Positions 42,020-61,076 of a stretch of 64,000 bases of DNA are shown piece by piece. Each line of letters opens with the position of its first letter. The stretch's first letter is position 1. The position numbers and the translations under genes were made by a program. Under the pieces are notes generated by a model. That model did no database searches and was not told the origin of the DNA. It was given only the letters and a program-made list of their open reading frames with translations. The DNA comes from Macrostomum lignano (lineage: Eukaryota), in NCBI GenBank assembly GCA_002269645.1, contig NIVC01001363.1, positions 241,707-305,706 of the forward strand. The letters are read 5' to 3'.

Positions 42020-42043
42020 TACCGTACGATAATTAGGGAATAT

Positions 42044-43066
42044 ATGCCAACTTTGACCCCTCAACAAACATCCATCCGCCCTCTGAGCAGCCGGTCGCGT
42101 CTCCCGAGTCTCGCCGGCGCCGTCTCGTGTCTCAGCCGGCAGCCCAGCCGGCTCTGGTCCACCGGCCCGCCGGACCGACCGCCCTGCGTCATCGGCGAGG
42201 GCGCATTCGGCCGCGTACTTCGCGGCACTTTCAAAGGCCAGCCAGCGGCCATTAAAGAGGTCGGCGAACGGCCGAATGCGCGTCGACGCTGGCGCGGACC
42301 CGGCGACAGTCCAGATCACGACTATCGGCGGGAGATTCGCGGCGCCGAGTTCCTACTGAAGCTCAGCCACGAAAACGTGGTCCGCTACATGCACTTTGAC
42401 AGCAGCAGCGAGCCCGGCCTGCTTTACGTTGTCATGGAGCTGATCGAGGGCCGGAATCTCGCTGAGTTGAGACGCAAAGGGCCCTTCAGCGAAGACGATT
42501 TGCGATCGCTCATGACTCAGGTGAGTAGAAATCGTTCTCACTCGGCTTGGATGTTTTGGTGTTTAGACTCCAATCAGCAACCCAGTTTTATCTTTCAACC
42601 CTGCCAGACCTGCTGCGGCTTGCACTATCTGCACAGTCGGCAGCCGTCAATCATTCACCGCGACGTCAAGGGCTCCAACATCATGCTGTCGAGCCGGGAC
42701 AACGTGGCCAAAATCGTGGACCTCGGCTTGGCGGTCCAGGGCGCTCCAGCTGTCGGCCACTCGCTGGCTGGCACGCATCGCTTCATGGCGCCAGAGGTCT
42801 ACGAGACCCGGGCTTACTCCACCAAGTCTGACGTGTTCGCTCTGGGCTGCGCCCTCTTCGAGTTGCAGTGCGGCCAGCCGCCTCACTCGGACAAGTCCAA
42901 CGGGATGGCCGTCTGTTACGCGGTGATGTACAGCCCGATGCCGCGGCTGCCTGATGGTTGTAATCGCCGACTGGTGGACTTCTACGATCGGTGCACCAGA
43001 AAATACCCGATTGAGCGGCCAACTGCTGAAGAGCTGCTGGGACACACCTTTCTGGTTGGAGCTTGA
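42044..43066 (+). CDS. Ser/Thr protein kinase (STE/NEK-like by appearance); intron 42521-42607; true 5' end uncertain
   Basis: GEGAFG, AAIK, E in alpha[32 protein letters not shown]; gtgagt...ctgccag intron of 87 nt. Confidence 0.92.
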
Positions 43067-43097
43067 TTCTATCATTCTCAAACCGGGAATGTTACCA

Positions 43098-44075
43098 CCC
43101 GGAAGGATTCCAACCGGAAGGATTCCAACCGGAAGGATTCCAACCGGAAGGATTCCAACCGGAAGGAAGGATTCCAACCGGAAGGATTCTAACCGGGAAG
43201 GTTTCCAACCGGAAGGATTCCAACCGGAAGGAAGGATTCCAACCGGAAGGATTCCAACCGGAAGGAAGGATTCCAACCGGAAGGTTTCCAACCGGAAGGA
43301 TTCTAACCGGAAGGATTCCAACCGGAAGGATTCCAACCGGAAGGATTCCAACCGGAAGGAAGGATTCCAACCGGAAGGATTCCAACCGGAAGGATTCCAA
43401 CCGGAAGGATTCCAACCGGAAGGATTCTAACCGGAAGGATTCCAACCGGAAGGTTTCCAACCGGAAGGTTTCCAACCGGAAGGATTCCAACCGGAAGGAT
43501 TCCAACCGGAAGGATTCTAACCGGAAGGATTCCAACCGGAAGGTTTCCAACCGGAAGGTTTCCAACCGGAAGGATTCCAACCGGAAGGTTTCCAACCGGA
43601 AGGATTCCAACTGGAAGGATTCCAACCGGAAAGAAGGTTTCCAACCGGAAGGATTCCAACCGGAAGGATTCCAACCGGAAGGTTTCCAACCGGAAGGTTT
43701 CCAACCGGAAGGATTCCAACCGGAAGGTTTCCAACCGGAAGGTTTCCAACCGGAAGGATTCCAACTGGAAGGTTTCCAACCGGAAGGATTCCAACTGGAA
43801 GGATTCCAACCGGAAGGATTCCAACCGGAAAGAAGGTTTCCAACCGGAAGGATTCCAACTGGAAGGATTCCAACCGGAAGGATTCCAACCGGAAAGAAGG
43901 TTTCCAACCGGAAGGATTCCAACTGGAAGGATTCCAACTGGAAGGATTCCAACCGGAAAGAAGGTTTCCAACCGGAAGGATTCCAACTGGAAGGATTCCA
44001 ACTGGAAGGATTCCAACCGGAAAGAAGGTTTCCAACCGGAAGGATTCTAACCGGGAAGGTTTCCAACTGGGAAGG
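43098..44075. repeat. 15-bp tandem minisatellite CCGGAAGG(A/T)TTCCAA directly after the kinase stop
   Basis: Direct inspection; explains the EGFQP/KDSNR/GRIPT ORFs. Confidence 0.97.
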
Positions 44076-44566
44076 TTAACCAAAACTGTACAAAATACCT
44101 GACTGCTGACACCTGTGATGTCACTGATTTGCTCAATTTCGCATGCATCTACAAATTTAACCACAGATTTCTTAATTGGATAAATTTTCCTAATTGAAAC
44201 TTTTTGGCCCGTTCTTTACATCCAGCTTTGAAAGGCAATAAATGCAAGCCAAGACAATCTGCATTTTCCACTGCAGGCTTTTCAATTTTTTTGTAAAAAT
44301 GTAAATATATTCCTAAATGAAGATTGTTAAACAGATTTTCTATATAGAGACCGTTCGATTTTTTCTTCTAATTCAACTTTTGAACAACTAGCAATCATTT
44401 GAAGCTCTATCTAACAATTCCCAGAAATTTCCATACCTGTGCGTAATACTCTACTACTACTATTGACCTATAAGTAGGCAGAACTGGTGTTTATTTTGTA
44501 CTTTACCCGAAGATAATCGCATTCGAACAAACACAGTCCGGGAAAACTCATCCCTCAAAAGTTCTC

Positions 44567-44800
44567 TCAAGAGTTGCGCGTCGCCTTGACAGCCTTGGCA
44601 ATTTTGCCAACAACCTTGGCAGTTCCGATCACCATGCCGAAGAGGCCTCTCTCCTCTGTCAGGGCGGACGCGTCCACGTCGGACATGGCCCGCATAGCGG
44701 CCAAGTTCTCAGCCTCCTCCCGGTTGAGTCGCTGATGGTTGGGAGCGGCCGCGGCCAGGGCTGCGCAGAGCAGAAATCCGAGAGCGAGCTGCCACTTCAT
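44567..44800 (-). CDS. Secreted antimicrobial-peptide-like precursor 1 (77 aa): signal peptide, acidic pro-region, cationic GLFGMVIGTAKVVGKIAKAVKATRNS
   Basis: MKWQLALGFLLCAALAAAAP signal; EEAE..LTEER pro-piece; predicted mature part has 4 K, 1 R and no acidic residues; paralog at 53669-53902. Confidence 0.8.
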   Translation of the reverse strand: MKWQLALGFLLCAALAAAAPNHQRLNREEAENLAAMRAMSDVDASALTEERGLFGMVIGTAKVVGKIAKAVKATRNS

Positions 44801-45494
44801 GCTTGAGTCTGAGTCTGTTGCTGTGCGAGCTGATGAAGCTGAGAGTCTGCGATTGAGCTGGCTCGATTGTCTCATGGAGCGGTCGGGAGATCGGCATTTA
44901 TGCACAAAACAGCGGCACGTTTTTCCGGTACAACGAGCGGCACGCGTCAGAGTTTGAGCTGGGGACTCAAGTGAGCAGAGCGCATGCAGCTCTGTTGCTT
45001 CGTCTACTTTCTTGGACTTACCTCACCATTGTGATTGTCCTGCCGAATTTTTTGTGTTACCTGACGGTTCTGCGTAAAAACTATCAGAGCAAACGTAAGT
45101 TTATGTCAAAATTTTGAATCTGGATATCAATGTATAAAGTCACTATAAGATTGAGTACAATTATATTATTACGTTTATCTCTCAAAGCGTTTTTTCGACG
45201 GTGTGACTTCTAAGACTACCTACCAATTTCTTTGTAGCAATACTAATTTGTATCTTGATTGATATTCAACCCATGTCTAACCAGAAATGATTCAATAAGT
45301 TCATCTATATGACCCAACATGACCATGCACATTTTTGCTTGTCGTCTCGTAGGTATACTTTTTTACGTGAAGCTTTGCTAGCAACTCAGGTGCTTGCATA
45401 GATTTGTGCACAGTTTGCGTCAAAATTCTGAAATTTAACGGAAGGAAGCTTTTCCGTCTCGTAAATTTTATTAGAAAAGGCACAGATGGCAGTT

Positions 45495-48400
45495 TCACAG
45501 CACATTCCACTGCATTATGCAGGCTTCTGAGCCGCCCACAGCAACGAGACGAGTGCCTTCCGATAGGAATTTCAAGCTGGAAATTTTGCACGGACCGTGG
45601 AACACTCGGAATTGCGCCTGCGGAAAGCGAAAACGTTTTTAGCGATGTCACGCATGCTTGCATCAATCCTTGCAGCTATGATCTGCACAGCAGCATCCAA
45701 CATCAACCGGACACCAACCAACTCTACCCAACAGCATCCAACATCAACCGGACACCAACCAACTCTTACCCAACACCATCCAGCATCAACCGGACACCAA
45801 CCAACTCTACCCAACACCATCCAACATCAACCGGACACCAACCAACTCTACCCAACACCATCCAACATCAACCGGACACCAACCAACTCTACCCAACACC
45901 ATCCAACATCAACCGGACACCAACCAACTCTACCCAACAGCATCCAACATCAACCGGACACCAACCAACTCTACCCAACACCATCCAGCATCAACGGCCG
46001 TGGATGCCGCTTACATTCGAACTGATGCAGGGCATCCTGTACAGCAGCACTTGGCCCGTGTCCAATCCCACCGCCAGCAGGTTCCGTGACGGACAGGCGT
46101 CCATTGCTGTGATGTTTCTCTTGGCGGCCACCTCTGAGTTCCACACACCTATACGGAGAATTGAATATTACTGTTATGAATCCATTTGAACGAGTCCGAT
46201 CAAGCACCAATTATCGCACAGATTATAAAGTGCTCGATCTCTTACCAACAGAATAGTAGCAACATAGGCAGCTATGGGTACTCCAGGTCACATTGCGAAA
46301 TCGCTCCTCCCCAGTGGTCAGGTGAAAGTTTGTTGCGTCGCCTGTCAAAGTCAATAATTTTCATATTACTTAAGTCGGGGCAGACAATTTGACTCAACTT
46401 CCATTAGCTGCAACCCATCTCAATAGTCTTAGTCTTAGTCCCAACAGAACTTTGGAAACGAGAACAGCTTTCGTTTAGAAACTTGGCCTCAAAAATGTTG
46501 ATAGAGAAAAGTTTTTATTTGTTAAGCATCCCTCGCTTCTGAAGTTATTTATGGGTCATTGTTTGTAAGAAGTTGTACAGAACCGTTGGGTTAGCGCTCC
46601 GACCCAGCGTCGAATGTACATCGAAGTTTCGTAGTTTACAAAAAAATGGCTCGTAATAATAATTATTATTGATTACACCTGCCCTCATGGCCAGATGTGC
46701 AACCGACAGCTCAGCCGCAGCTATTGCGCGGCGCATCTGAAGGTTGCGTACGGCTGTTCAGTCCAAGGACTGGGAAGGGGGTCGCCACACCCTCAATTAC
46801 CCCAGCTAATGTTGGCACGCCCATTTTACAGCTGGGTGAACTGAAGCAATGCAGAGTTCAGTGTCTTGCTCAAGGACACAAATTGTTCTTAGTGGGATCG
46901 GGAATCGAACCCCCGACCTTGGGGTTCGATCCCCGCTCTGACTACTAGGCTGCAAGCCAACAGCATTCGTCACTCTTCAACAGTTTACAAAGCTTTTAAA
47001 GCTCACAGAAAGCCAGCTCGGCGATACGGTTGCTGGCACGCAGCAGCAGGGAGCCCTCGAATCGGTCGCTGGCAAAGTCGATGGCCTCGACGGCCCGACG
47101 GAGGACGCAAATCTCACCAACGACGAGCCAGGAGCTGCTGCGAAGCTCGGCAGCCGATGACTGTGGAGCATCGGACCTGTCCTGCTCCGTAGAAGTTGGC
47201 CGCGTCAGAGAAGCTGACAGCTGAGGCTGATGCCTGCGCTGCTCGATAAAGTAGATCCTGCCGCGGGCGTCTCCAACGGCAACCATCTCGCCGGCTGGAG
47301 TGGGAAAAGCAAACTTTTCATCCACTCAGTTTATGCACTCTTCAACAAGCAAGTGCGTTTTTCGATTGATCTACTTCGTCTGGTCAATTAATGTGACTTA
47401 AGAAATTGTCAAAAGCTGTAGGGTAGTCAGGATTCACTTCTGTGGGTTATTAAATAATAATAATTGATTAAACCTGCCCTAATAGGTAGATGTGCAACCG
47501 ACAGCTCTGCCGCAGCAATTGCGCGGCGCATCTGAAGGCTGCGTACGGCTGTTCAGTCCAAGGACTGGGGGGTCGCCACACAGCCTCAATTGCCCCAGCT
47601 AATGCTGACACCCATTTTACAGCTGGGTGAACTGAAGCAATGCAGAGTTAAGTGTCTTGCTCAAGGACACAGATTGTTCTCAGTGGGATCGGGAATCGAA
47701 CCCCCGACCTTCAAGTCGTGAGTCCGTCGCTCTAATCGCTAGGCTACGACCCCTGCTGGTTAGTATAACATTATGATAGAATTTTGCAGTTGTCAATGTG
47801 AAAATCTGAGGGGGCGCATTGTTTGTATAAAATTTTAGGAGGCAGTTTTTACCAAATACGCTCGAAATACGTTTTTGGAGAATGGAGATTTTCATTTTTG
47901 CAGCAAAAAATTGTAATTACTTTTGATAGGAGTCAGATCCAATGTTCAAATTTTAAAACTAATAATAAATGATAATTTTATAGTCTTCACACTCATCAGT
48001 AGTGAGCCTTCATACGAGGGTAACGTAGAATATAATGTTTTAATCGGGCTATTATAGACCATATTTATGACAAAAAACTTAGCCTAGTCAGTGTTGTCTC
48101 ATTTGGCTGAATGCTTGAACTATTGCAGTTAAAAATTAATTTAGTAACATAATCAATAAGCTAATAATGAATAAAAAGATTCATAATACGAATGAATTAA
48201 ATTGTGTCATTTTTATTATTTTTAGTCACAAAATATGTACGTTGGACAAAAAAGTTAAACCTACCCGTACAATCCTAATTTTATAAGCAGAAAGCTTTAC
48301 AAATATGAACATTGGGTCTGCCTCCTCTTCAGCCGATAAGCTGCTTACAAAGCTTCAAACAAAGGAAACATCAACGCCAAGTTGAAACTCACAGGGAGCG

Positions 48401-51400
48401 GTTGCGATTGCAGTGATTTTGTGTCTGGCCGTCCTCCGTTTGAAAACCTGGCACAGAACGGAGCCGGACCGCTGCAGAATGATCAGCTGACCAGTTCTAG
48501 TTCCCAGGATCAGCGTTCCGCTGCTGTGCCACAGAACGCTAGAGATGCACTTTTTCTGAAGATAAGATTGTGTAATAGTGCTGAGGCCGGCCACACAAAC
48601 AGAAAATACAGTAGGTTTTGGTGGGTTCCATTTTAGGATGAATTGAAGGAAGGAAGGAAGGAAGGAAGGAAGGAAGGAAGGAAGGAAGGAAGGAAGGAAG
48701 GAAGGAAGGAAGGAAGGAAGGAAGGAAGGAAGGAAGGAAGGAAGGAAGGAAGGAAGGAAGGAAGGAAGGAAGGAAGGAAGGAAGGGAGGAAGGAAGGAAG
48801 GAAGGAAGGAAGGAAGGAAGGAAGGAAGGAAGGGAGGAAGGAAGGTAGGAAGGAAGGAAGGGAGGAAGGAAGGAAGGAAGGAAGGAAGGGAGGAAGGAAG
48901 GTAGGAAGGAAGGAAGGGAGGAAGGAAGGAAGGAAGGAAGGAAGGAAGGGAGGAAGGAAGGAAGGAAGGAAGGAAGGAAGGAAGGAAGAGGAAGGAAGGA
49001 AGGAAGGAAGGAAGGAAGGAAGGAAGGAAGGAAGGAAGTCCCAGTAAGTCTTGGACACTGATTACAATCAATAATAAAGAAGTTAAAGCTGCTCAGCACT
49101 TACCGGTAGAACGGCAGTGTGCAGACACCGGTGGGACTCGGCATTGTACATTCGCACCTGGCTGTCGTAGCCGGCCGTGACGAAGACAGACGGGTGGCTG
49201 GTCAGGCCGCCGAGGCTGCGCAGCCGATCGTAGTGCCCGGCAGTCAGTGGATCTGGAAGCAGCTGCGCCTCCGCCAGAGGGTTCTCCGGAGTATGCTCTG
49301 AGTCGTCTCCAGAAGTTACTTCGGTTTCACGTGCTCCTGGCGCTGGGAGACGGCACAGAAAGATGGCATTGGTTGTGGTGCCAAGCGCCAGCAGAATGCC
49401 GCCAATGTCCTGGTCCTGCTGACTTGCGTTATCGGCAGCGTCTTTTTCTGCGCCACCAGCAGTCTTGCAGGCGCAGACGCAACGAATTCCGGCGTTGCCT
49501 GCAGCTTCCTCTGGCAGGGCCAGACTGCTCACGGCTGACGATTCATTTTGTTTTTTTAACGAAGTTGACGAGCCAGCTTCTTGGCGATTTTCATCAGGAC
49601 TCATTGTTGGTGGCATGTCGGATGCGCGCCAGACTAACAGGCGCCCATCGCGACCGCCGCTGAGAATCCAGTTCTGGTCATTGAATAGGAGCTCCAGTAA
49701 GGTGAACACGGGACCCTGTTCAGATAGGCAGGTAATAGTAGCTGTAGATTGTATTTTCCGTCTTTGAGCCTGTCCAAGTCCTAGGAAAATTCCCTTATAG
49801 TCCACAGTATTGAGGGCCAAACACAAAGGCCGAGTGCGTATGACGAGTACACTGCCCGATTATGAGATAGTCTGGGCCGATGTACATCCTGTGGGAGCGT
49901 GTGCCTTCGTTCGTATCCGGGTCAACGGATTGTAGAGTGTTCTACCTCCCGTAAAAAAGGTAAAAGAAGTTAATCATAGGATGCTACTGTAAGTAGGTAA
50001 GTGCACGCATGCGCAACTGAAACTTAACAATTAACCATGTTACTGTATAATACGCAAAAAGTTATGTTACCCTTTTAGCGCAACACATGAGTTGTAATGC
50101 TATTTTGGACTGCAAATTCGCCTATAAATACAAGCGGTCCGAAGCGGACCAGGAGCCAACTCCCGACGAGAGGAGAAGCTCCGAAGAGGAAGCCTTAGGA
50201 GGACTTCCTGATCACCAAGTCAATCGAGACTCGGTCGAGTTGTTGCGGTAAGCCTTCCTTATTTGCGCCCGTTGTGTTAGAGACGCCTCGCTCAAGTCTA
50301 GTGTTACTTGAGTTTAGTTGAGTCTGTTGAGACTCTTGAGTCTGTTTAGACTCTACTGGTTGCAGTCTCCAGAAGGACTGCCACTGATAGATCTTAGAAG
50401 ACTATCAGTGGTTTCCGGAGCTATACCTAGAGTGCATAGAGGCACTGCTAGAAGAAGGAGGCTTAACTCGAACCGCTGTTCGGCGCAGGGTACCCATTGT
50501 TGATACGAGGCCTCTGATTGGTCCTGACTGCAGATACCGGCCGGAAGGAACTTCATCGAAAGTCCAAGAAGAACCAGGAACAGAACCAAAGAAGAGACAA
50601 GGCGCCTGATCTACGGATCATCTGAGACCAGAACTACTGGTGACTAGACCTACAGCGAGATCTAAAAAGAGTACTCAACGGAGGATACAACTAAAGGTAA
50701 GTGATACCTTTATCTGATAACTGGGTTGCCTAGCAAGTAGCTAGAAGTGATTGTTCCTTGATTACAGTTGAGGACTGGTAATAAGGAACACATCAGGATT
50801 GAGCACTGCTCGAATTCCCTACTTCGAGCTTCTTATGAGTTCCTTACTCCTCGGACCACCGGTCACTCAGTAGAAGTTTCTTCGGCTGCTCAACAATTGT
50901 GAACATTGCTTTTATTGTAAAAAGGCTCATGTCTTCTGTCTAATATAGAAGCATATAAACTCCTAAAATATAAATACAAAACCGAAAATTAAATGCTTCA
51001 CACCTGATGCAGCTGGCTTCCCAGTCGTATTATTCGACAGCCGCTACTCTCGTTCTCCGGATCGGCGTCATCCCACACGGCAACTCCTCCGCTTGAGTCG
51101 CCAGTGACCAGCAGGCCATCGGTGCAGTAGACCGCGCTAACCACGTACCTCGCCGACAGGGCAGTCACGTCACCCTCTCGGACCAGCTGCAGCTGTTTCT
51201 TACCATCGCCATCGCGATCCCAATGACGCCACCAGGCGATGTGGCCGCGCCCGACCGTCACGAACGCGCCGTCGACGCCGGGGCTCACAGTGACGTCGCA
51301 GACAACAGCTGCAGACGGTCGAACCATGGCGAGAATCGATCGGGACTCGAGGCTCCAGAGCTTCAGCTGCGGTTGAGGCGAGCTGTCGTCCACGGATATC

Positions 51401-54400
51401 AGGCGCTGTTGCGATGGTGGAATGAATGCGGAATTACATAATGTTGATGGTGGATGGTTCGAGGCCGACCAAATAAACTAAAGAATAAAGTAGATCTAAC
51501 TGCGTGAAATTTTGGTCTGACTCTCAACCAGAAGAATCCTGCATGTATATAACAAGGACGACTTAAGTAGAAGGACGGGAAACCTCGTTTCTTAGAAAAT
51601 TTTTGAAGGCACTTTTTCCCGAAAAAATACACTGCGGAGATAGGAAATTTTCATTTTTTCAGCACAAAAATTGCTATAACTTTTGATAGGAGGCAGATCC
51701 AGTGTTGATCTTTTGATATGTTGTGCCTTTTTTATTGCTCTATCGATATTTATAAAGCTTTCCGTTCAGAAAATTAGGATTCTATGTTAATTTTTTATTC
51801 TACGTATATTTCCTGCATCTAAAAATCACAAAAAGGCATGACACAGCTCCAATATTTGGTTTTATGAATCTATTTTATCATCTTTGTTACAAATATTTGC
51901 TACACAGTCTGGTAAGAATTATAAAATAGACTCATAAAATCAAAGAGCCAAGCCGTGGCATTCTAATGTATTTCAAGCACAAGACACATGAAAATATACG
52001 TAGAATAAAAAATTAACATAGAATCCTAATTTTCTGAACGGAAAGCTTTATAAATATCGATAGAGCAATAAAAAAGGCACAACATATCAAAAGATCAACA
52101 CTGGATCTGCCTCCTATCAAAAGTTATAGCAATTTTTGTGCTGAAAAAATGAAAATTTCCTATCTCCGCAGTGTATTTTTTCGGAAAAAAGTGCCTTCAA
52201 AAAAATTCTAAGAAACGAGGTTTCCCGTCCTTCTACTTAAGTCGTCCTTGGTATATAATTCATTGCATATTCACACCGCTCTGGTTTGAATTGAAGATAA
52301 AACATAAAACAGTCTCCCTGTCACTGCGTTCTCGATCCTGCAGCGATATCCCGCTTAAAAAATTCAAGCCGATTCCTGGTTAAATTCCAAGTTAAACTGT
52401 GAATATTCAAGGTTTATCTAGGAATGAGAGTTAAGATCGCTTCCAAGTTAAACTGACGTTTGAATTCATTGCACTTTAACAAAGTACGGATTAAAAAAGT
52501 TGAAAAAATGACTGTTAAACTTAGCTAACTGTAAATAAATTTCAAAGTTTAAAGTTAAAATATTAGGCTGAACTTCTGTACACACATAAATGAAACGCAG
52601 CATGAGAAGTAATAGATTTGAATGTTATCGCTCGCTGCTCAGACATACGCTGTTCGGCATCAGTGTTCACTTGTGTCGCCAAAGTTTAATGCACACGCTT
52701 CAGCTGATGGCCATAGACAAACTGCCGATAGGTTAATAATGTTTCAACTGATGCCCATAGACAAACTGCCGATAGGTTAATAATGTTTCAACTGATGGCC
52801 ATAGACAAATTGCCGATAGGTTAATAATGTTTCAACTGATGCCCATAGACAAACTGCCGATAGGTTAATAATGTTTCAACTGATGCCCATAGACAAATTG
52901 CCGATAGGTTAATAATGTTTCAACTGATGCCCATAGACAAACTGCCGATAGGTTAATAATGTTTCAACTGATGCCCATAGACAAATTGCCGATAGGTTAA
53001 TAATGTTTCAACTGATGCCCATAGACAAATGCCGATAGGTTAATAATGTTTCAACTGATGCCCATAGACAAATTGCCGATAGGTTAATAATGTTTCAACT
53101 GATGCCCATAGACAAACTGCCGATAGGTTAATAATGTTTCAACTGATGCCCATAGACAAATTGCCGATAGGTTAATAATGTTTCAACTGATGCCCATAGA
53201 CAAATTGCCGATAGGTTAATAATGTTTCAACTGATGCCCATAGACAAATTGCCGATAGGTTAATAATGTTTCAACTGATGGCCAAAGACAAACTGCTGCC
53301 GATAGGTTAAGAATTTTTCATCCGTGGACTTGCCGAAATTGAAGTCACTTCTGCTAAAGTCGAGATCAAAATGGCATGCTAAGCTAAGACAGACGATCCG
53401 CTATAGACTATATACGAACACACTCGGTTTTTGCTCATATACAGGACTGTACGCTGGTTTTTGTTAAATTAGTCAACACATTGATAGTAAAAATGTTAAT
53501 AAATGAAGGATCCTGTTACGCGTGTATTTTAGAGTACTTAGTTGACAAATTCCAGATGGTATTAGAACTTTATATTATCATATTACATAGCGCTTTTTAG
53601 GCCTTTTGAAAATCGTTGGAAAGCTAGTAAAGTCTGGTCCGTTGTGTCATTCATTGTCTTGTAGATCTTCAGTTGGCGATGGCGTGGGCGACCTTCTTGA
53701 TGTTCCTGATGACGCGGACCACCTTCCTGATGCGGATGCCCTTCTTGGCCAGCTGCTGGAAGCCCTCCTCCGTCAGGCCGGACTCTTCCAGGTTGGCCAC
53801 GGCCTCCAGAGCCGAGGTGGTCTCGGCCTCCTCCTGCTGGCTGGGCACGGCGGCGGCCAGAGCCGCGCAGAGCAGAAGTCCGAGAGCGAGCTGCCACTTC
53901 ATGCTTGACTCTGAGTCTGTTGCTATGTGAGCTGATGAAGCTGAGAGTATGCGATTGAGCTGGCTCGGTTGTCTCATGGAGCGGTCGGGAGATCGGCATT
54001 TATGCACAAAACAGCGGCACGTTTTTCCGGTACAAGGAGCGGCACGCGTCAGAGTTTGAGCTGGGGACTCAAGTGAGTCCATGAAGTACTGCTACAGTAC
54101 TTCTTCTCTTATGCAAGTTCGACCAAAGGGCAAACAATCCTTTTCTGTGAGTAGATGGTTTACTTATGATTCATTTTTCGGCAGCCTGCAATGTAACAAT
54201 AACTTGAACAAAGTTTCTCATGCTCCCACTCAATTACTCAGGACTTCAAGAGAAATCATGTCAGTAGCTTTCCATTGGCAAGCCATTATGATTGTTTGTG
54301 TTTGCCCAGCTTGTGTGCTCAGAGTACAACAGCTCACAAAGTAGCAAGAGACATTGCTAATTAAACATCTCTCGCCTAGAGTTTACGAGCCGCAAGTCAA

Positions 54401-57400
54401 TCTTGTCCTGAAAGGAATTTTTACCATAATTTACGCCTTCTAGGAGGTAAAGCTTACATCGGGGTCCAGAAAGACCAGACACACGATTGACGAAGCTGCA
54501 GAAGAGGCTTCGCTGTCACATAGTTCGGCGTCCGTCTCCAGGGTGGCGGTGCTCCAAACGCGTACGCCGCCGCCACAGCCGCCACTGGCAATGGTGTTGC
54601 CGTCCGGGTGCAGACAGAGGCTGCAGAAAAGAAAGAAACACACGATGAGAAAATAGTAAATTTGACCTCAATAAAAGTTGCACCATGACGCAACGCTTTC
54701 GGCGACATGGTCGCGCAACCAGGCCTGAGTCAATTCTGCCAATTTCGCTGACTCCTGAGCAGATTTAATACTGTACGCAGGCCCAGACTTTCTAATCTTT
54801 AGGCATGTACACTCTCTGAGCGGACTAGTAGAGGTCACTTCAATAGTAGAGGTCTAAATATGGAGTTTACGAATAAAAAAGGCATGAATTTCATTGTCCT
54901 CAATCCACTGTGACGCATAACATCCCCGTTTCATTCGACAACAGAAGTCGGCAAACTCCGGCCTGCTGGTCACATGCGGCCCGCGAAGCCTCTTCATCTG
55001 GCCCTCGGGTCTTGTGAAACTTCACAATGGCAATCCGGCCCGCTCAAGGTTCATGTCTCTTTTCAGCACTCTCTTTTTATCTCTTCTCTCCCCTCTTCTC
55101 TCCCCTCTGCTCTCCCCTCTTCTCTCCCCTCTTCTCTCCCCTCTTCTCTCCCCTCTGCTCTCCCCTCTTCTCTTCCCTCTGCTCTCCCCTCTTCTCTCCC
55201 CTCTGCTCTCCCCTCTTCTCTCCCCTCTTCTCTCCCCTCTTCTCTCCCCTCTTCTCTCCCCTCTTCTCTCCCCTCTGCTCTCCACTCTTCTCTCCCCTCT
55301 TCTCTCCCCTCTTCTCTCCCCTCTTCTCTCCCCTCTGCTCTCCCCTCTTCTCTCCCCTCTTCTCTCCCCTCTGCTCTCCCCTCTGCTCTCCCCTCTGCTC
55401 TCCCCTCTGCTCTCCCCTCTTCTCTCCCCTCTTCTCTTCCCTCTGCTCTCCCCTCTTCTCTCCCCTCTTCTCTCCCCTCTTCTCTCCCCTCTTCTCTCCC
55501 CTCTTCTCTCTCTCCTCTTCTCTCCCTGCTCTTCTCTCCCCTCTTCTCTCCCTCTGCTCTCCCCTCTTCTCTCCCCTCTTCTCTCCCCTCTTCTCTTCTC
55601 TCCCTCTTCTCTCCCCTCTTCTCTCCTCTTCTCTCCTCTTTCTCTCCCCTCTTCTCTCCTCTCTTCTCTCCTCTCTCTCTCTTCTCTCCTCTTCTCTCCC
55701 CTCTTCTCTTCCCTCTTCTCTCCCCTCTTCTCTCCCCTCTTCTCTCAAGCTAAGCTATCAAATCAAGCTATCAAATTACCTTTTTACATCGCCAGCATGC
55801 TCTCGATAGTGCCTCTGCTTTGAGCCGCTTCCGTCAGGTGAGTAGCTGAGCAGTACGACCAGCCGGCCGGTGGGGTAGACCAGCTCGCCCGTGCTCGGCA
55901 GCGATGCCAGGTTCTTTCGACAGTCGTTGCCCCGGTAACCGTAGCTTAAGAGGAGGAAACAGAGTTTTTCGGTCATGCCATCGCCAGTGCGGCACGTGAG
56001 AATTTTGTCAAACATTTCCAATGGCTTTCCATCAGCGTCTACACCTGGGGGTCAGCAAAGTTTTTTACCTTAAGGCACAGATAGAGAACCCAGCGCATGG
56101 CTGCGAGCCAGAGGAGGGGATAAAGAAGAGGGGAGTAGAGAAGAGAGATAGGAGAAATTAGAGACGAGGGAAAAACGAAAATAGGGGAAAAAGGACGAGA
56201 GGAGAAAAGAGATGAAATAGGAGGGGAGAGAAGAGCTTGTAGAGAAGGGAGAGAAGGGAGAGGAAAGAAGAGAGAAGTGAAGGAGAGGAGAGGAGAGGAG
56301 ACGAGAGGAGACGAGAGGAGAGGAGAGGAGAGGAGAGGAGAGGAGAGGAGAGGAGAGGAGAGGAGAGGAGAGGAGAGGAGAGGAGAGGAGAGGAGAGGAA
56401 AGAAGAGAGAAGTGAAGGAGAGGAGAGGAGAGGAGACGAGAGGAGACGAGAGGAGAGGAGAGGAGAGGAGAGGAGAGGAGAGGAGAGGAGAGGAGAGGAG
56501 AGGAGAGGAGAGGAGAGGAGAGGAGAGGAGACGAGAGAGAAGGAGAGAAGATTGTAGAGAAGGGAGCTGAGAAGAGACAAAAACCTTTAGCGGGGCCGGA
56601 TTGCTGTTTTGAAGTTTTTGTGCACCACATGCGGCCCTTCGGGCAGGAGTTTGCCGATCCCTAATCTACATCTATGCTTCCACCTTACACCCAGTCCAGT
56701 TCGAGCCGGTCAACGGGCTCCGGCTGCACCTCCGTGGTCGCCCCGTCGGTCCATTGTATGTCATCTGGACACGTGATCAGCCGCTCGCCAAATCTGCATT
56801 TGATTTCCAGCTGCCTGATTGCCATCGCTGTCGGATGCTGAATAGGAGACGGCGTCAGCTGTGCTGCTGGGTGCTGCTGATGCGGTATCGCCAGTTGATT
56901 TTTACTGCCACCTCCCAGGTGCGCCACTGCAGGGGTTGGAACGGCTTCGATTCCAGAAGCAGCAGCAAACGAACTCCTGGACCCGTTGATTCCGATCGAC
57001 TTCTTAGCTGGCGATTGGCCTCGCAAACCGTCTTTGCGATTGTCTTTGCCATTCTCAACGACTTCGTCGCCGCTCTCCGTTGATGCGAGGGTCACCGTGG
57101 ACCAGGTGGCACTGCTGGCTGCCTGCAAGACGGTGCAAAGTAAACTAATGCAGTCAATTATGTTCTGGTACGACAAGCAATATCACACAAGGTCGCATGT
57201 TGAACCCGCGTGATTTACCGAGCTGGTCCCGCTGAGCGATTGAAGACTCGCGTTGATCGCCGCACTGACGGTCTTGGCCGATTCCTGCCTGGGCGCCTCC
57301 GGGTGCGCTTCGAAGTAGGCCTGCTGTGCCTGCTGCAGGAACTTCATGAACTTCTGCCAGCTGAATTGGAGAAGTTGGGATTTTATGGAGAGTAAAAAAT

Positions 57401-60400
57401 TACGGCTGGTAAGAAAGACGTCGCTTAAAAATGATAAAAATGTTTTTCCCTCACCGCACAGCTCCAGTTGCTGAATCTTTACATTGATGGAGCACAGCTG
57501 CCAGCACCGAGCCATAGACTGGATTGTCGTACCTGGCGCACACATCCAGCACCTGAAGGGGTTCGCATTGTAAGGTTCATTCATGTCTTATATTTCTATG
57601 TCTATATTTGTCTTGGGCTAAGTGACACCGCTCAGTCTGAACGGACTGTAAGTGACACCGCAGTCTGAACGGACTGTAAGTGACACCGCAGTCTGAACGG
57701 ACTGTATGTGACACTGCAGTCTGAACGGACTGTAAGTGACACTGCAGTCTGAACGGACTGTAAGTGACACTGCAGTCTGAACGGACTGTAAGTGACACTG
57801 CAGTCTGAACGGACTGTAAGTGACACTGCAGTCTGAACGGACTGTAAGTGACACTGCAGTCTGAACGGACTGTAAGTGACACTGCAGTCTGAAAGGACTG
57901 TAAGTGACACTGCAGTCTGAACGGACTGTAAGTGACACTGCAGTCTGAACGGACTGTAAGTGACATGCAGTCTGAACGGACTGTAAGTGACACTGCAGTC
58001 TGAACGGACTGTAAGTGACACCGCTCAGTCTGAAAGGACTGTAAGTGACACTGCAGTCTGAAAGGACTGTAAGTGACACTGCAGTCTGAAAGGACTGTAA
58101 GTGACATGCAGTCTGAAAGGACTGTAAGTGACACTGCAGTATGAAAGGACTGTAAGTGACACTGCAGTCTGAACGGACTGTAAGTGACACTGCAGTCTGA
58201 ACGGACTGTAAGTGACATGCAGTCTGAACGGACTGTAAGTGACACTGCAGTCTGAAAGGACTGTAAGTGACACTGCAGTCTGAAAGGACTGTAAGTGACA
58301 CTGCAGTCTGAAAGGACTGTAAGTGACACTGCAGTCTGAAAGGACTGTAAGTGACACTGCAGTCTGAACGGACTGTAAGTGACATGCAGTCTGAACGGAC
58401 TGTAAGTGACACTGCAGTCTGAACGGACTGTAAGTGACACCGCTCAGTCTGAAAGGACTGTAAGTGACACTGCAGTCTGAAAGGACTGTAAGTGACATGC
58501 AGTCTGAAAGGACTGTAAGTGACACTGCAGTATGAACGGCTCACCGCACGCTTTGGCAGCAGGCCGCTCCTACTGATGTTCCGCTTGCGAAGGTCCCTCC
58601 GGATGATGTCTAAATCCACGTATCGCCTGTGCAGCGTCAGCTGCTCAACCACGCGCCGAGTGAGCTCCGACGAGGCCGCAGTGGTCGATTCCGAGCTCTC
58701 CAGGAGGCCTGCTCCAGTGGAAACTTGGACGCTCTCTCGACGGGTATCGGCATGAGCGCTCACCAGACGGAAGGTAGCGGCGTCGCTGTCAACCCAGCCC
58801 GTGGCGGCGAAGCTCAAACTCGCCTGACTGTCGTTCAAGTGCGCACGGCTGTCATTTTGATCGATACCGACAACATCGGCGGCGCATGCGGCAGCCAGAC
58901 GGTCGAGTAGTCGTTCAGACAACGGCATCTGGTGCTCGTTGGCAAGTCTGTGCAAATCTTTGCATGGCAGGGCGCCTTCGGCTGTGGAAGCGGCGCTCAG
59001 CGCGGAGACGAAAGCGCGGAGTTTCAACCGGCTGACCGACTCCAACGAGCGGGTCAGCTGGCGCTGAAGAGGCTCGGATTGCGGTCCTCCATCACTGGCG
59101 TCTGCGGAAGCAATTTAAAAATTTAAGTGGGCTATTGTAGCCGCCATTCGAGTGCTATGGTTAGGGTAGGGTAGGGTAGGGCTAGGGTAGGGTTAGGGTT
59201 GGGTTAGGTTTGGGTTAGAGTAGGGTCAGGGTAGGGTAGTTTTAGGGTAGGGTTAGTGTAGGGTTTTTTGTAGAGTTTGTTAAGATTTGCAAAGGGGGTC
59301 CGGGAGACAAAAAGATGCAGGCAGTTTGCAACAATGTCACATAATAAGTTTCCAATCCAATCGTTTGAAGTTTCACTCAGATTTCGGTGCACTAATTTAC
59401 GATTATCTTAATGTAACTTGTCAGAGCAAGGAATTTAGGAACATTCAAAAGCTTTATTAGGCAAAGATTGCAATGAATTGAACTCCCCCCAGTGCGTGCC
59501 GTGTTAGTGAAGAATTGAAGAATTTGCGTCCGTTCCAGCCTCCGTTGGCGATCCCCCATCAGCGTCCAAACCCTTGGCCAGAGAAGTTCTAAGTCAGCAT
59601 CGCCCCATCATCATAAAACTGCGAGCGACCTCTCGGTTCCGGGGAGCAACAATGGCCAAACCGAGGCACTTCCTGCCGGGGAGTTAGGGCATTTTTATCC
59701 CGAGAGACCTGCTCCAGCCTTCCCTACTTACCTACAGCAGGTATGCTTGGGTTAACAACAAGGTGAATTGGTGCGGTTTATTAGCCAGAAAGCATCACTA
59801 AGGCGGTGGCCACGCTGTCAAGCAAACGACAAGAATACCTCTGGTTGGCAAGGCTGATCATGGGAGCCGGCTGGAGCATTGAAAAAATCAAAGCCAAGAG
59901 GTTCTGAGCACAGAGAGCGGTTGGCGTATGAGCAACCCAATAACAAATTAACGCAGTAGGTGCAAAAATTTGCTTTTATGTTTCTTCTGACTGCTACCTA
60001 ATTTTTTCTTTTTTCGTTTAAAAAATTCCCGGTGATTAGTAATTATTGATGTGTGCCTAACTGCCTACCTACCTACCTATCTACCTGCAAATCTACCTAC
60101 TTAACTACCTATCTATCTGCCAATCTACCCACGGGTACCTAAATGCCAACCTATCAACCTACAAACCTACCAACATACCTACCTACCTACCTACCAACAT
60201 ACCTACCTACCTACCTACCTACCTACCTACCTAGACTACTCTTAAATCAGACAAAACTACAATAGAATGAAGTCACTCAGTTATTCAGCTCACTTTAAGA
60301 GAAGCAACTGCTATTTTGTTTTATTACTTTGCTTTTTCAACATCAATTTCCTGTGTGATTTGAAAGTCATAAAAACTTTACAAGATGGCCAGCTTCTGGC

Positions 60401-61076
60401 TTAAAAATAACTAGAAACACTAATTTAATAATAATAACAATTGATAACACCTGCCCTAATGGCCAGATGTGCAACCGACAGCTCAGCCGCAGCTACTGCG
60501 CGGCGCATCTGAAGGCTGCGTACGGCTGTTCAGTCCAAGGACTGGGAAGGGGGGTCGCCACACAGCCTCAATTACCCCAGCTAATGCTGGCAACCATTTT
60601 ACAGCTGTGTGAACTGAAGAAATGCAGAGTTTAAGTGTCTTGCTCAAGGACACAAATTGTTCTTAGTGGGATCGAGAATCGAACCCCGACCTTCAAGTCG
60701 TGAGTCCAACGCTCTAACCACTGGGCTACAAACACTAAAGGCAGTCAATTTTGCAATTTTGCAACCAGCTGAAATATGTATAACGAATTTTCTAATCTAA
60801 TTTTCTTAAGCATTTTTCCCGAAAACGTTGGGCCTTCAAGTACAAATTCCAGGGAGCGTCCTTGTTCTTCTAGCGGTCTTTGGAAGCTTAAACGGTTCTT
60901 GGCCTTCAGCATAATTAGTCAAATTAGTCAGCGCTTCCTGCATGCTCACCGGCGCAGTTGCTGTGGGCTGCCCAGCTGCCAATTCTCTTCATTCTTTGAG
61001 GCGGCGAGCCCTCGTTGGAGAGGCCGAAGTTGCAGACCTCGCGGCCCTTCTGCCGCTGCCGGGGCTGCTTCTGCAT
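45495..61076 (-). CDS. EML/EMAP-like HELP-WD40 microtubule-associated protein with an N-terminal EF-hand-like region; 15 exons: 61076-60950, 59101-58545, 57552-57455, 57360-57219, 57122-56689, 55944-55780, 54620-54458, 51405-51004, 49715-49104, 48555-48393, 47294-47007, 46341-46246, 46148-46015, 45617-45495 (14 traced; a further 5' exon is possible)
   Basis: HELP motif PVDRLELDWVYGYRGNDCRKNL..L.TGELVY; WD repeats; EML-type VTWSTHSC..GVW, LLAVG...QVLLYRMPC and terminal LVAVGG.EACIMQW; all traced junctions are GT-AG and phase-consistent. Confidence 0.88.
45693..45994. repeat. 41-bp tandem minisatellite in the last EML intron
   Basis: CCAACATCAACCGGACACCAACCAACTCTACCCAACACCAT units. Confidence 0.93.
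46655..46952 (-). mobile_element. tRNA-derived CORE-type SINE, copy 1
   Basis: - strand tRNA head with B box GGTTCGATTCC, CORE-like GTGTCCTTGAGCAAGACACT...CACCCAGCTGTAAAATGG, (AAT)n tail; two more copies in the window. Confidence 0.85.
47455..47752 (-). mobile_element. tRNA-derived CORE-type SINE, copy 2
   Basis: Near-identical to 46655-46952; A box-like TAGCCTAGCGA and B box GGTTCGATTCC. Confidence 0.85.
48646..49038. repeat. (GGAA)n microsatellite, intronic
   Basis: Direct inspection. Confidence 0.97.
51546..52257. mobile_element. MITE with about 266-bp near-perfect terminal inverted repeats and about 180-bp spacer, TA(TA)-flanked
   Basis: 51546-51811 is the reverse complement of 51992-52257 with few mismatches; termini TATATA(A/C)CAAGGACG; no coding capacity. 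Confidence 0.9.
52700..53312. repeat. 44-bp tandem minisatellite CAACTGATGCCCATAGACAAATTGCCGATAGGTTAATAATGTTT
   Basis: Direct inspection, about 13 contiguous units with no spacers. Confidence 0.95.
53669..53902 (-). CDS. Secreted antimicrobial-peptide-like precursor 2 (77 aa), nested in an EML intron: signal, acidic pro-region, cationic GFQQLAKKGIRIRKVVRVIRNIKKVAHAIAN
   Basis: MKWQLALGLLLCAALAAAVP signal; EEAE..LEES.LTEE pro-piece; C-terminal 31 aa contain 5 K, 4 R and no acidic residues. Confidence 0.8.
   Translation of the reverse strand: MKWQLALGLLLCAALAAAVPSQQEEAETTSALEAVANLEESGLTEEGFQQLAKKGIRIRKVVRVIRNIKKVAHAIAN
53903..54078 (-). promoter_or_regulatory. Conserved 5' UTR/proximal promoter shared by the two AMP-like genes (paralog 44801-44975), with a TATA-like CATAAAT
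   Basis: About 175 bp nearly identical upstream of both ATGs, including TGCATAAATGCC on the - strand about 100 nt before the ATG. Confidence 0.6.
55078..55746. repeat. 12-bp CT-rich tandem repeat CTCTTCTCTCCC / CTCTGCTCTCCC
   Basis: Direct inspection. Confidence 0.95.
56280..56535. repeat. (GAGAG)n purine microsatellite
   Basis: Direct inspection. Confidence 0.93.
57618..58535. repeat. 28-bp tandem minisatellite GTAAGTGACACTGCAGTCTGAA(C/A)GGACT filling an EML intron
   Basis: Direct inspection. Confidence 0.96.
59160..59258 (+). repeat. Degenerate interstitial telomere-like (TTAGGG/TAGGG) tract
   Basis: ttagggtagggtagggtagggctagggtagggttagggtt... Confidence 0.8.
60062..60232. repeat. (CCTA)n-like microsatellite
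   Basis: Direct inspection. Confidence 0.85.
60425..60732 (-). mobile_element. tRNA-derived CORE-type SINE, copy 3
   Basis: A box-like TAGCCCAGTGG, B box GGTTCGATTC, same CORE body and AAT tail as copies 1-2. Confidence 0.85.

Follow-up and report, generated by a model that had tools for sequence, protein, structure and literature searches.

A clustered Macrostomum gene family of predicted prepropeptides with a uniform promoter and signal region and hypervariable cationic C-termini

We analyzed a 64,000-nucleotide stretch of the Macrostomum lignano genome (contig NIVC01001363.1; hereafter the window) and found that two short open reading frames in it, genes A and B, are genuine, unannotated members of a clustered Macrostomum gene family. 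Members of this family share a conserved promoter, 5′ untranslated region (5′UTR), signal peptide and acidic pro-piece, followed by hypervariable cationic C-termini, an arrangement that the first-pass annotation had proposed from A and B and that holds across the family. From this layout, the best reading appears to be a lineage-restricted family of host-defence or cytolytic peptides. We lean, on balance, towards the proposal as a whole, namely that these are independently transcribed prepropeptide genes that would yield membrane-active host-defence peptides.

Both genes are, as first described, single-exon, and run from ATG to stop on the minus strand (Table 1); the encoded proteins are MKWQLALGFLLCAALAAAAPNHQRLNREEAENLAAMRAMSDVDASALTEERGLFGMVIGTAKVVGKIAKAVKATRNS for A and MKWQLALGLLLCAALAAAVPSQQEEAETTSALEAVANLEESGLTEEGFQQLAKKGIRIRKVVRVIRNIKKVAHAIAN for B. 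The EEAE and LTEE motifs are present in both, and the C-terminal charges given earlier proved correct (+5 for A; +9, or +7 after KK, for B). Third-codon-position GC reaches 75% in A and 92% in B, close to or exceeding the values in the adjoining exons of an EML-like gene (65–74%). A 24-mer at the ATG and a 40-mer that includes the TATA box have exactly two occurrences each in the window, with zero expected, and neither tblastn nor blastn found a third copy there. Scanning of the window for Rfam families and tRNAs gave none. Repeats in the window have M. lignano counterparts at 72–91% identity. In exact look-ups, A, B and one neighboring open reading frame were absent from the records of called genes.

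Gene B is located inside an intron of the EML-like gene, between coding matches ending at about 54533 and starting at about 51408, with gene A some 500–520 bp beyond that gene's last coding match, on the 3′ side. The possibility that A or B is an EML exon was ruled out, because the same promoter and ATG persist in family members in unrelated genomic contexts. No EML gene was found near the M. lignano loci of the nearest relatives, and therefore no orthologous locus was identified. A and B are probably independently transcribed.

Table 1. Positions of genes A and B, their component parts and the host gene in the window.
Feature	Position	Strand	Remarks
Host EML-like gene (context)	45498..59084	−	HELP motif and two EML beta-propellers
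Gene A coding sequence	44567..44800	−	Single exon, 77 codons + stop
Gene A signal peptide	about 44744–44800	−	
Gene A pro-piece	44648–44743	−	
Gene A putative mature peptide	44570–44647	−	GLFGMVIGTAKVVGKIAKAVKATRNS
Gene A candidate polyadenylation signal	44490..44495	−	AATAAA, 72 nt past stop codon
Gene A conserved 5′ block (promoter + 5′UTR)	44801..44975	−	169/175 identical to gene B block
Gene A TATA box	44896..44903	−	GCATAAAT, about 102–103 nt before ATG
Gene A family cis-element	44916..44926	−	GGAAAAACGTG, ACGTG core 18 nt upstream of TATA box
Gene B coding sequence	53669..53902	−	Single exon, 77 codons + stop
Gene B signal peptide	about 53846–53902	−	
Gene B pro-piece	53741–53845	−	Includes KK site
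Gene B putative mature peptide	53672–53740	−	GIRIRKVVRVIRNIKKVAHAIAN
Gene B candidate polyadenylation signal	53571..53576	−	AATATA, weak variant, 93 nt past stop codon
Gene B conserved 5′ block (promoter + 5′UTR)	53903..54077	−	
Gene B TATA box	53998..54005	−	GCATAAAT
Gene B family cis-element	54018..54028	−	GGAAAAACGTG

Alignment of A with B revealed a gradient of divergence along the gene. The upstream DNA is 96.6% identical over 175 bases (six differences), beyond which identity falls sharply to 31%, the background level; the signal peptides agree at 51/57 nt (89%) and the pro-pieces at 61/81 nt (75%), consistent with the near-identity of signal peptide and upstream DNA noted at first reading. 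The mature regions, described there as unalignable, are indeed no more alike than shuffled sequence (40 identities vs 35.9 ± 3.1 in shuffles, p 0.13), and we rejected the possibility that the two mature peptides are relatives of each other; identity in the 3′ flank is likewise not above shuffles. Purifying selection acts on the signal peptide (pN/pS 0.18 between A and B); the corresponding value for the pro-piece is 1.44. The upstream block has diverged less than the adjoining synonymous sites (Fisher p about 0.0003–0.001). A coding function for this block was rejected, because none of the six A/B differences would be synonymous in the open frame leading into the ATG; the TATA box also lies inside the block. 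Within the precursor, the mature part evolves fastest: between close M. lignano paralogues, pN rises from 0.02 (signal peptide) through 0.06 (pro-piece) to 0.27 (mature part). Synonymous divergence is also raised in the mature part (pS 0.35 vs 0.04–0.06 elsewhere), so the pattern is no proof of positive selection.

The prevalence of the family was examined by searching a profile of A and B against 1.84 billion representative proteins, which gave seven matches (E 1e-14 to 4e-4), six of them M. lignano hypothetical proteins and one a Logan assembly contig. Further family members, which the first-pass annotation had suggested seeking with the conserved regions, were thus found, and a 10-member profile extended the set to at least 26 clusters, 25 with M. 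lignano names and one being the same Logan contig (E down to 2e-35). A word-indexed search with A alone returned no homologues; only the index-free profile search recovered the family. The M. lignano members are all labelled "hypothetical protein" (BOX15_Mlig names); the expectation that annotation would miss such genes therefore holds for A and B, which are not on record, but not for these relatives. All M. lignano copies examined are single-exon with an uninterrupted reading frame, and copies cluster locally, with six in 20 kb at one locus (L007), a tandem pair at another (L003) and an inverted pair at a third (L002). The relatives in M. lignano are transcribed; RNA-seq transcripts with TransDecoder ORFs are the sole source of the Mlig_3_7 GenBank annotation (PMC5730564), and the 5′-partial gene models mostly begin 30–93 nt before the ATG, i.e. 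downstream of the TATA box.

Searching the family against Pfam and PDB by sequence yielded nothing beyond sub-threshold noise, and A, B and eight relatives had no match to the frog skin peptide profile PF03032 at E ≤ 1. A literature search with peptide strings, gene identifiers, and terms for antimicrobial, cationic and neuropeptide peptides of Macrostomum returned no description of the family. The family has so far been found only in the genus Macrostomum, and deep conservation is therefore unusable as a test. Taken together, these searches bear out the earlier suggestion of an uncharacterised invertebrate family, here a multigene one.

Members are built alike: the signal peptide (MKWQLALGLLLC) is followed by an acidic pro-piece, and a K/KK/KKK site then precedes a cationic tail of 7–47 residues whose sequence is highly varied. 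The signal peptides follow the pattern M[KR][WY]Q[LFI][AV]LGLLLC..., which A and B match over residues 1–19, and the pro-piece core is (A)LEAL..L(D/E)E(S/P)..(S/T)EE. The pro-piece of B is ALEAVANLEESGLTEE (net charge −6), and that of A, AAMRAMSDVDASALTEE, is a degenerate, weakly acidic version of the core (net charge −3). Among the tails are helical, Arg/Trp-rich, Pro/Arg-repeat, His-rich, Cys-containing and very short types, spanning 7-residue (X-Arg)n peptides, predicted to be amidated, to a 47-residue Arg/Tyr/His-rich peptide, with charges of 0 to +19. Some relatives have tails of 7–9 residues, the uncharged tail GFHVHFHG or the non-cationic tail AVYKPNYYKD. Peptide A and the M. lignano member P0015 have only a marginal GK[IV]AKAV stretch in common (p about 0.05). 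A C-terminal G or GK, a predicted amidation signal, is present in 20/25 members; this feature is common but not universal, and A (ending TRNS) and B (ending AIAN) are without it.

A promoter module could be aligned in all 16 family copies examined. In this module A[AC]ACGTG precedes [CT]ATAAAT by 18 nt, 85–125 nt before the ATG, and variants of it are retained by divergent members. The pattern GGAAAMAYGTG-N(8-22)-ATAAAT is found once upstream of 15/16 copies and is otherwise absent from about 180 kb; in 13 of the 16, ACGTG and TATA are separated by 18 nt. The modules of A and B are complete and identical to each other, with the element at −120 and the TATA box at −102.

The C-terminal peptides were then compared with respect to processing site, charge and helicity. 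The basic site before the tail reads LAKK, followed by GIRIRK, in B, which is probably cut after KK, judging from the family alignment; A has lost the family KK site and has EER followed by G, where the cut is predicted. AlphaFold2 models a single continuous C-terminal helix in each protein (residues 51–76 in A, 45–76 in B; pLDDT about 70–76), and both peptides have a periodicity peak at 100–120 degrees. The helical hydrophobic moment is 0.54 for B (best 18-mer 0.82; shuffle p 0.04) and 0.25 for A (best 18-mer 0.40; shuffle p 0.25), the latter not above shuffled sequence, so that the cationic amphipathic C-termini claimed at first reading are clear for B and only moderate for A. In charge, hydrophobic fraction and helical moment, the peptides lie within the range computed for melittin, magainin 2, cecropin A and LL-37. 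Across the family, the net charge of the pro-piece mirrors that of the mature peptide (r = −0.85, n = 25; Spearman r = −0.82, p = 0.001, for 12 representatives), the values being −3/+5 for A and −6/+7 for B.

On the basis of these features, we propose that each gene, A and B included, would be transcribed from its own compact promoter, in which a TATA box lies about 100 nt before the ATG and A[AC]ACGTG another 18 nt upstream. The product would be a prepropeptide in which a signal peptide of 18–19 residues precedes a helical, acidic pro-piece and the cationic peptide forms the C-terminus. It would enter the secretory pathway with the cationic tail neutralised by the acidic pro-piece until a protease cuts at the basic site, which would be KK in B and most relatives and probably the EER–G junction in A. 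The freed peptide may then attack membranes as a host-defence effector, antimicrobial or cytolytic. The predicted B peptide has 23 residues, a charge of +7 and an amphipathic helix; the predicted A peptide has 26 residues and a charge of +5, its N-terminal half hydrophobic and its C-terminal half Lys-rich. The peptide-coding 3′ end would diversify, with the 5′ cassette of promoter, 5′UTR and signal kept near-uniform by constraint, gene conversion, or both.

An extended version of this proposal, doubtful when its parts are taken jointly, would combine a gene-converted 5′ module, a hypermutable 3′ end, new effectors and shared regulation. Short-tract gene conversion would homogenise a 5′ module of ~325 bp (promoter, 5′UTR, signal and start of the pro-piece) in dispersed as well as clustered copies, and the 3′ end would have a locally raised mutation rate, synonymous and non-synonymous, plus internal duplications. 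The ultra-short amidated peptides of alternating hydrophobic and Arg residues with a beta-strand pattern (FVRVRVRL-NH2, IFRVRVRI-NH2) would form an undescribed class, and the ACGTG/E-box and TATA elements would mediate co-regulation, with a bHLH-Zip factor (TFEB/MITF/USF type) as a possible regulator.

Other roles were weighed against host defence. The peptides could be cytolytic or toxic secretions acting outside immunity, either in the gut, lysing prey or food (diatoms, bacteria), or from the epidermis or rhabdites, deterring predators. The same architecture and charge neutralisation would support this, as would the match of peptide A to melittin in length and charge (26 residues, +5) and in having a hydrophobic N-terminal part followed by a basic C-terminal one, and the Glu-Glu-Arg motif of A, which resembles the processing motif of linear spider venom peptides. 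Sequence gives no separation of such a role from an antimicrobial one, the two often coinciding, and we regard secretion outside immunity as unlikely.

Precursors of neuropeptides or peptide hormones, cleaved at dibasic sites, often amidated and acting on receptors, would account for the K/KK/KKK sites of many relatives, for the C-terminal Gly or Gly-Lys in 20/25 and for short peptides of 7–11 residues; one subgroup ends in RF-Gly and is predicted to give an RFamide-like ...HVRF-amide (P0012, P0023). These RF-Gly relatives and the very short, uncharged or non-cationic ones leave room for a signalling role. For the family as a whole we consider it improbable, since conservation along the precursor is lowest in the mature peptide, the opposite of neuropeptide genes, and this peptide varies from 7 to 47 residues and from 0 to +19 in charge. 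Each precursor holds a single peptide, clustered paralogues number in the dozens, the amidation Gly is absent from A and B, and no Pfam neuropeptide family was matched, a match to a known one being what the first-pass annotation had named as refuting its view. Charge neutralisation (the co-variation of pro-piece and peptide charge), a fastest-evolving mature part and varied peptide types fit host-defence peptides or toxins better than neuropeptides.

Similarly improbable is a reproductive role, as seminal-fluid or prostate-gland peptides evolving fast under sexual selection or conflict. Small, lineage-restricted, quickly diverging products, predicted to be secreted, would agree with it, as would the many fast-evolving reproduction-related genes known in Macrostomum (PMC7336406, PMC5977470). 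Against it, charge-neutralised, highly cationic amphipathic tails are no known hallmark of seminal proteins, and six gene identifiers of the family, sought for expression data, do not occur in the searched supplements of four M. lignano papers. That A, B or both are functionless, as decaying copies or chance open reading frames, is highly improbable given the intact frames, the complete, mutually identical promoter modules, purifying selection on the signal peptide, strong codon-position GC bias and a family match far above chance, even though A departs from the family pattern (KK site lost, weakly acidic pro-piece, no C-terminal Gly) and both genes are missing from the records of called genes.

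The host-defence reading invites comparison with known systems. The first-pass annotation had recognised in A and B a hallmark of amphibian and fish peptide families; the resemblance stands as an analogy and not as homology. Neither PF03032 nor PF00666 was matched. Like the Macrostomum family, frog skin precursors of the preprodermaseptin type (FSAP_sig_propep, PF03032) combine a conserved signal peptide and acidic pro-piece with a hypervariable mature peptide, a frequent C-terminal Gly amidation signal and multigene clusters, and their 5′ part is conserved far above the 3′ part, synonymous sites included. They belong to another phylum, are processed at KR rather than at K/KK/KKK or EER, and have a signal/pro exon and a mature-peptide exon where the Macrostomum genes have one exon. 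Vertebrate cathelicidins also join one conserved prepro cassette to structurally diverse C-terminal cationic peptides released by proteolysis (predicted here), but their cathelin pro-domain (PF00666) has four conserved cysteines and their genes four exons, whereas the Macrostomum pro-piece is acidic, cysteine-free and 27–58 residues long, with no sequence homology.

Arminins of Hydra are lineage-restricted cnidarian antimicrobial peptides with many paralogues, and consist of a signal peptide, an anionic N-terminal region and a strongly cationic, Arg-rich C-terminal peptide. The Macrostomum family agrees with this layout and with the lineage restriction and number of paralogues; the whole-library profile search gave only Macrostomum proteins and one Logan contig, with no arminin similarity. 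The linear cytolytic venom peptides of spiders and scorpions (latarcins, cupiennins), with an acidic pro-piece, Glu-Glu-Arg and a Gly-started amphipathic cationic helix, resemble gene A only; the remaining family, B included, has Lys-Lys instead, and no homology exists. Trematode helminth defence molecules (HDMs) such as FhHDM-1 share with the family a flatworm origin, a size of about 8 kDa, an amphipathic helix at the C-terminus and, by prediction, secretion, but they are conserved parasite immunomodulators, unlike these hypervariable multigene clusters, and the library-wide profile search gave no HDM match.

In the literature searched, we came across no account of antimicrobial peptides encoded by genes of free-living flatworms, and no mention of A, B or the family sequences or genes. 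M. lignano is a flatworm model for regeneration with working transgenesis and, as the promoter is self-contained within roughly 180 bp, the family is directly testable by reporters and knockdowns. Should the peptides prove active, dozens of natural variants would be available, and the family would represent convergent evolution of the 'conserved prepro, hypervariable effector' type outside vertebrates and cnidarians. Even without antimicrobial activity, it would remain an unannotated, fast-evolving class of predicted secreted peptides in a regeneration model.

Pairwise DNA alignment of the two 77-codon genes A and B revealed identity at 169 of 175 positions immediately 5' of the ATG, dropping suddenly to the background level of 31% beyond -175. 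Within the genes, 51 of 57 positions were identical in the signal-peptide codons and 61 of 81 in the alignable pro-piece. The mature-peptide regions shared 40 identities, compared with 35.9 ± 3.1 in shuffled sequences, and the likeness of the 3' flanks was not above that of shuffled sequence. Alignment, region counts and shuffles thus bear out the first-pass annotation, which had described a pair with a conserved 5' part and unalignable mature peptides; it had also quoted the peptide charges and the motifs EEAE and LTEE correctly. A diagnostic 24-mer and a 40-mer each occurred twice in the window (zero expected), and tblastn and blastn found no third copy there. A frame runs open through the upstream block into the ATG; all six differences between A and B are amino-acid-changing in this frame, so the block is non-coding. 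Codon-position GC bias was strong in both genes, with third-position GC (75% in A, 92% in B) comparable to or higher than that of neighbouring exons (65–74%). Neither gene was recorded as a called gene in a database look-up.

A alone gave no match in a word-indexed protein database. An index-free search of 1.84 billion representatives with an A+B profile returned seven matches (E 1e-14 to 4e-4), six of them annotated 'hypothetical protein BOX15_Mlig...' from M. lignano and one from a Logan contig, and a ten-member profile recovered 26 clusters. All members share a signal peptide (M(K/R)(W/Y)Q(L/F/I)(A/V)LGLLLC...), an acidic pro-piece with the core ALEAL..L(D/E)E..SEE, a K, KK or KKK site and a C-terminal peptide. 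The C-terminal peptides are highly diverse and 7–47 residues long, including short alternating hydrophobic/Arg peptides (FVRVRARIRLG, IFRVRVRIG, WLRVRARVRIG) and their His counterparts (GFHVHFHG, FIHIHFG), 20–34-mers rich in Arg/Trp/Tyr and ending in GK, a Pro/Arg repeat (FLRVRLPRVRMPRVRLPRVRLPRLRVRFRWSKK), a 38–47-mer type rich in Arg/Tyr/His, a peptide with two Cys, and a hybrid, WRRRRRFRWRKAIRVAGKVAKAVL, whose end resembles that of A (marginal, p ~0.05). The M. lignano genes have uninterrupted ORFs and are locally clustered: six copies on both strands within 20 kb at one locus, one tandem pair and one inverted pair. Some gene models at three M. lignano loci (L007, L003 and L002) fuse adjacent copies, one (P0009) covering an inverted pair with a 4-kb 'intron' and a 69-residue model covering 3486–17256 in L007; such mergers are probably artefacts of annotation arising from near-identical 5' cassettes.

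The promoters were compared by aligning the 260 nt 5' of 16 copies from the window, M. lignano and the Logan contig. A shared module, CGGAAA(A/C)ACGTGCC followed by (G/T)(C)ATAAAT, lies 85–125 nt before the ATG; 13 copies have a spacing of exactly 18 nt from the ACGTG core to the TATA box downstream of it, and six have a distal CACGTG E-box ~38–48 nt farther upstream. All but one of the 16 copies are preceded by a single occurrence of the pattern GGAAAMAYGTG-N(8-22)-ATAAAT, which was absent elsewhere in ~180 kb, and variants of the module were kept in the most divergent members. This common module supports the reading of the copies as independently transcribed, co-regulated genes over that of host-gene exons. 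The M. lignano GenBank annotation was built solely from RNA-seq-supported transcripts with TransDecoder ORFs (PMC5730564), so the M. lignano relatives are transcribed; their 5'-partial gene models mostly start on the 3' side of the TATA box, 30–93 nt ahead of the ATG. P0014 (AVYKPNYYKD), the sole member with a non-cationic tail, keeps both ACGTG elements and has lost the TATA box, possibly a sign of decay or re-purposing.

Net charges of the pro-piece and C-terminal peptide were inversely correlated across 25 distinct members (Pearson r = -0.85) and across 12 subgroup representatives (Spearman r = -0.82, p = 0.001), the precursor minus its signal peptide being near-neutral. Charge neutralisation of this kind is familiar from defensin-type precursors and is not expected in neuropeptide precursors. 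A C-terminal Gly or Gly-Lys, an amidation signal, ends 20 of the 25 members; A and B are without it. By family alignment, B is predicted to be cut after KK to give GIRIRKVVRVIRNIKKVAHAIAN (23 residues, +7, helical moment 0.54, best 18-mer 0.82). The KK site is lost in A, for which cleavage after Glu-Glu-Arg appears most likely, giving GLFGMVIGTAKVVGKIAKAVKATRNS (26 residues, +5), with a hydrophobic N-terminal half and a whole-length helical moment of 0.25, not above shuffled sequence. The strongest periodicity of both peptides is at 100–120 degrees, and both fall inside the computed range of four classical helical antimicrobial peptides. AlphaFold2 predicted, with modest confidence, a single helix over residues 51–76 of A and 45–76 of B.

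Comparison of A with B indicates purifying selection on the signal peptide (pN/pS 0.18) and none on the pro-piece (pN/pS 1.44). Divergence of the non-coding upstream block (0.034) was below that of adjacent synonymous sites (~0.2; Fisher p ~0.0003–0.001). Among close M. lignano paralogues, with small counts and non-independent pairs, pN was 0.02, 0.06 and 0.27 and pS 0.06, 0.04 and 0.35 for the signal, pro-piece and mature part, respectively; because pS climbs along with pN, the pattern is not simply one of positive selection. It is compatible with a 5' cassette homogenised by constraint and/or short-tract gene conversion, and also with a 3' end that mutates faster, and the data do not tell these apart. 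Internal duplications were also found, with the pro-segment doubled in P0020 and the signal in P0019, and an Arg/Tyr tail is expanded at the M. lignano locus L006.

Coordinates of genes, ORFs and repeats (window positions unless a locus is named)
Feature	Position	Strand	Remarks
Gene A	44567-44800	minus	77-codon ORF
Gene B	53669-53902	minus	77-codon ORF
EML-like gene	~59084 to ~45498	minus	HELP motif and two EML beta-propellers
HELP motif of EML-like gene	55782-55988	minus	
Protein kinase ORF	42020-43063	plus	long ORF, complete domain; Pkinase, E 4.7e-46
Minisatellite	43071-44080		15-bp unit
Tox-ART-HYD1 ORF 1	5779-6207	minus	Pfam Tox-ART-HYD1, E 3.9e-13
Tox-ART-HYD1 ORF 2	8782-9135	minus	Pfam Tox-ART-HYD1, E 6.6e-6
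Tox-ART-HYD1 ORF 3	17011-17370	minus	Pfam Tox-ART-HYD1, E 6.6e-13
Non-LTR retrotransposon ORF	9806-15094	plus	1763 residues, uninterrupted
Palindromic repeat	51553-52251; 3369-4048		L006 counterpart 17806-18499
Short interspersed repeat	46689-46882; 47488-47753; 60458-60731		L006 copy 16452-16736
P0014 gene	6001-6198		L008, M. lignano NIVC01003344.1
Locus L007	438102-458419		M. lignano NIVC01000181.1

The window is repeat-rich and eukaryotic, and shares repeats of 72–91% identity with M. lignano contigs; the peptide family and these repeats assign it to the genus Macrostomum. Gene B lies within an intron of the EML-like gene, in the same orientation, and gene A ~520 bp past its last coding match. 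The EML-like gene was most similar to EML proteins from scallops and one barnacle, at only 21–26% identity; its N-terminal part aligns with the scallop EML EF-hand region, and its open frames contain long low-complexity and minisatellite-encoded stretches. A ~700-bp palindromic repeat, whose first copy sits in the EML intron holding B, matches its L006 counterpart in both orientations (91% and 83% identity) and resembles a foldback or MITE-like element. A short interspersed repeat with three window copies is also present in L006 (73–82% identity); ARAGORN called no tRNA at these copies. The minisatellite lies directly downstream of the kinase ORF. The three small, single-exon, paralogous Tox-ART-HYD1 ORFs match an ADP-ribosyltransferase toxin domain uncommon in animal genomes and may be another effector family. 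The retrotransposon ORF encodes PWWP, AP-endonuclease, reverse transcriptase and RNase H domains and may belong to an active element.

Collectively, the best-supported reading of these sequences is that the genes encode lineage-restricted, secreted, charge-neutralised cationic peptides that would be proteolytically released and act on membranes in host defence. The data do not tell an antimicrobial role from other lytic ones, for example food lysis or predator deterrence, and a reproductive role is possible. A neuropeptide role is less likely, given that conservation is lowest in the mature part, which varies hugely in length and charge and co-varies in charge with the pro-piece; amidation signals and one RFamide-like subgroup make it conceivable for some members. 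Decay or chance ORFs are unlikely because ORFs and promoters are intact and the signal peptide is constrained.

Cathelicidins, frog skin peptide precursors and Hydra arminins likewise combine a conserved prepro region with a variable cationic effector, but the Macrostomum family belongs to none of them, since Pfam gave no match to any family, frog FSAP and cathelicidin included, a PDB sequence search gave none, and a library-wide profile search found no non-Macrostomum protein, the Logan contig apart. In the literature searched, the peptide strings, gene identifiers and Macrostomum antimicrobial peptides were not found in any paper. The earlier proposal of an antimicrobial or toxin family is partly supported: it stands as to family, architecture and evolutionary pattern, and the activity is putative. 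The setting in a transgenic flatworm model, together with the compact conserved promoter, makes the family readily amenable to experiment.
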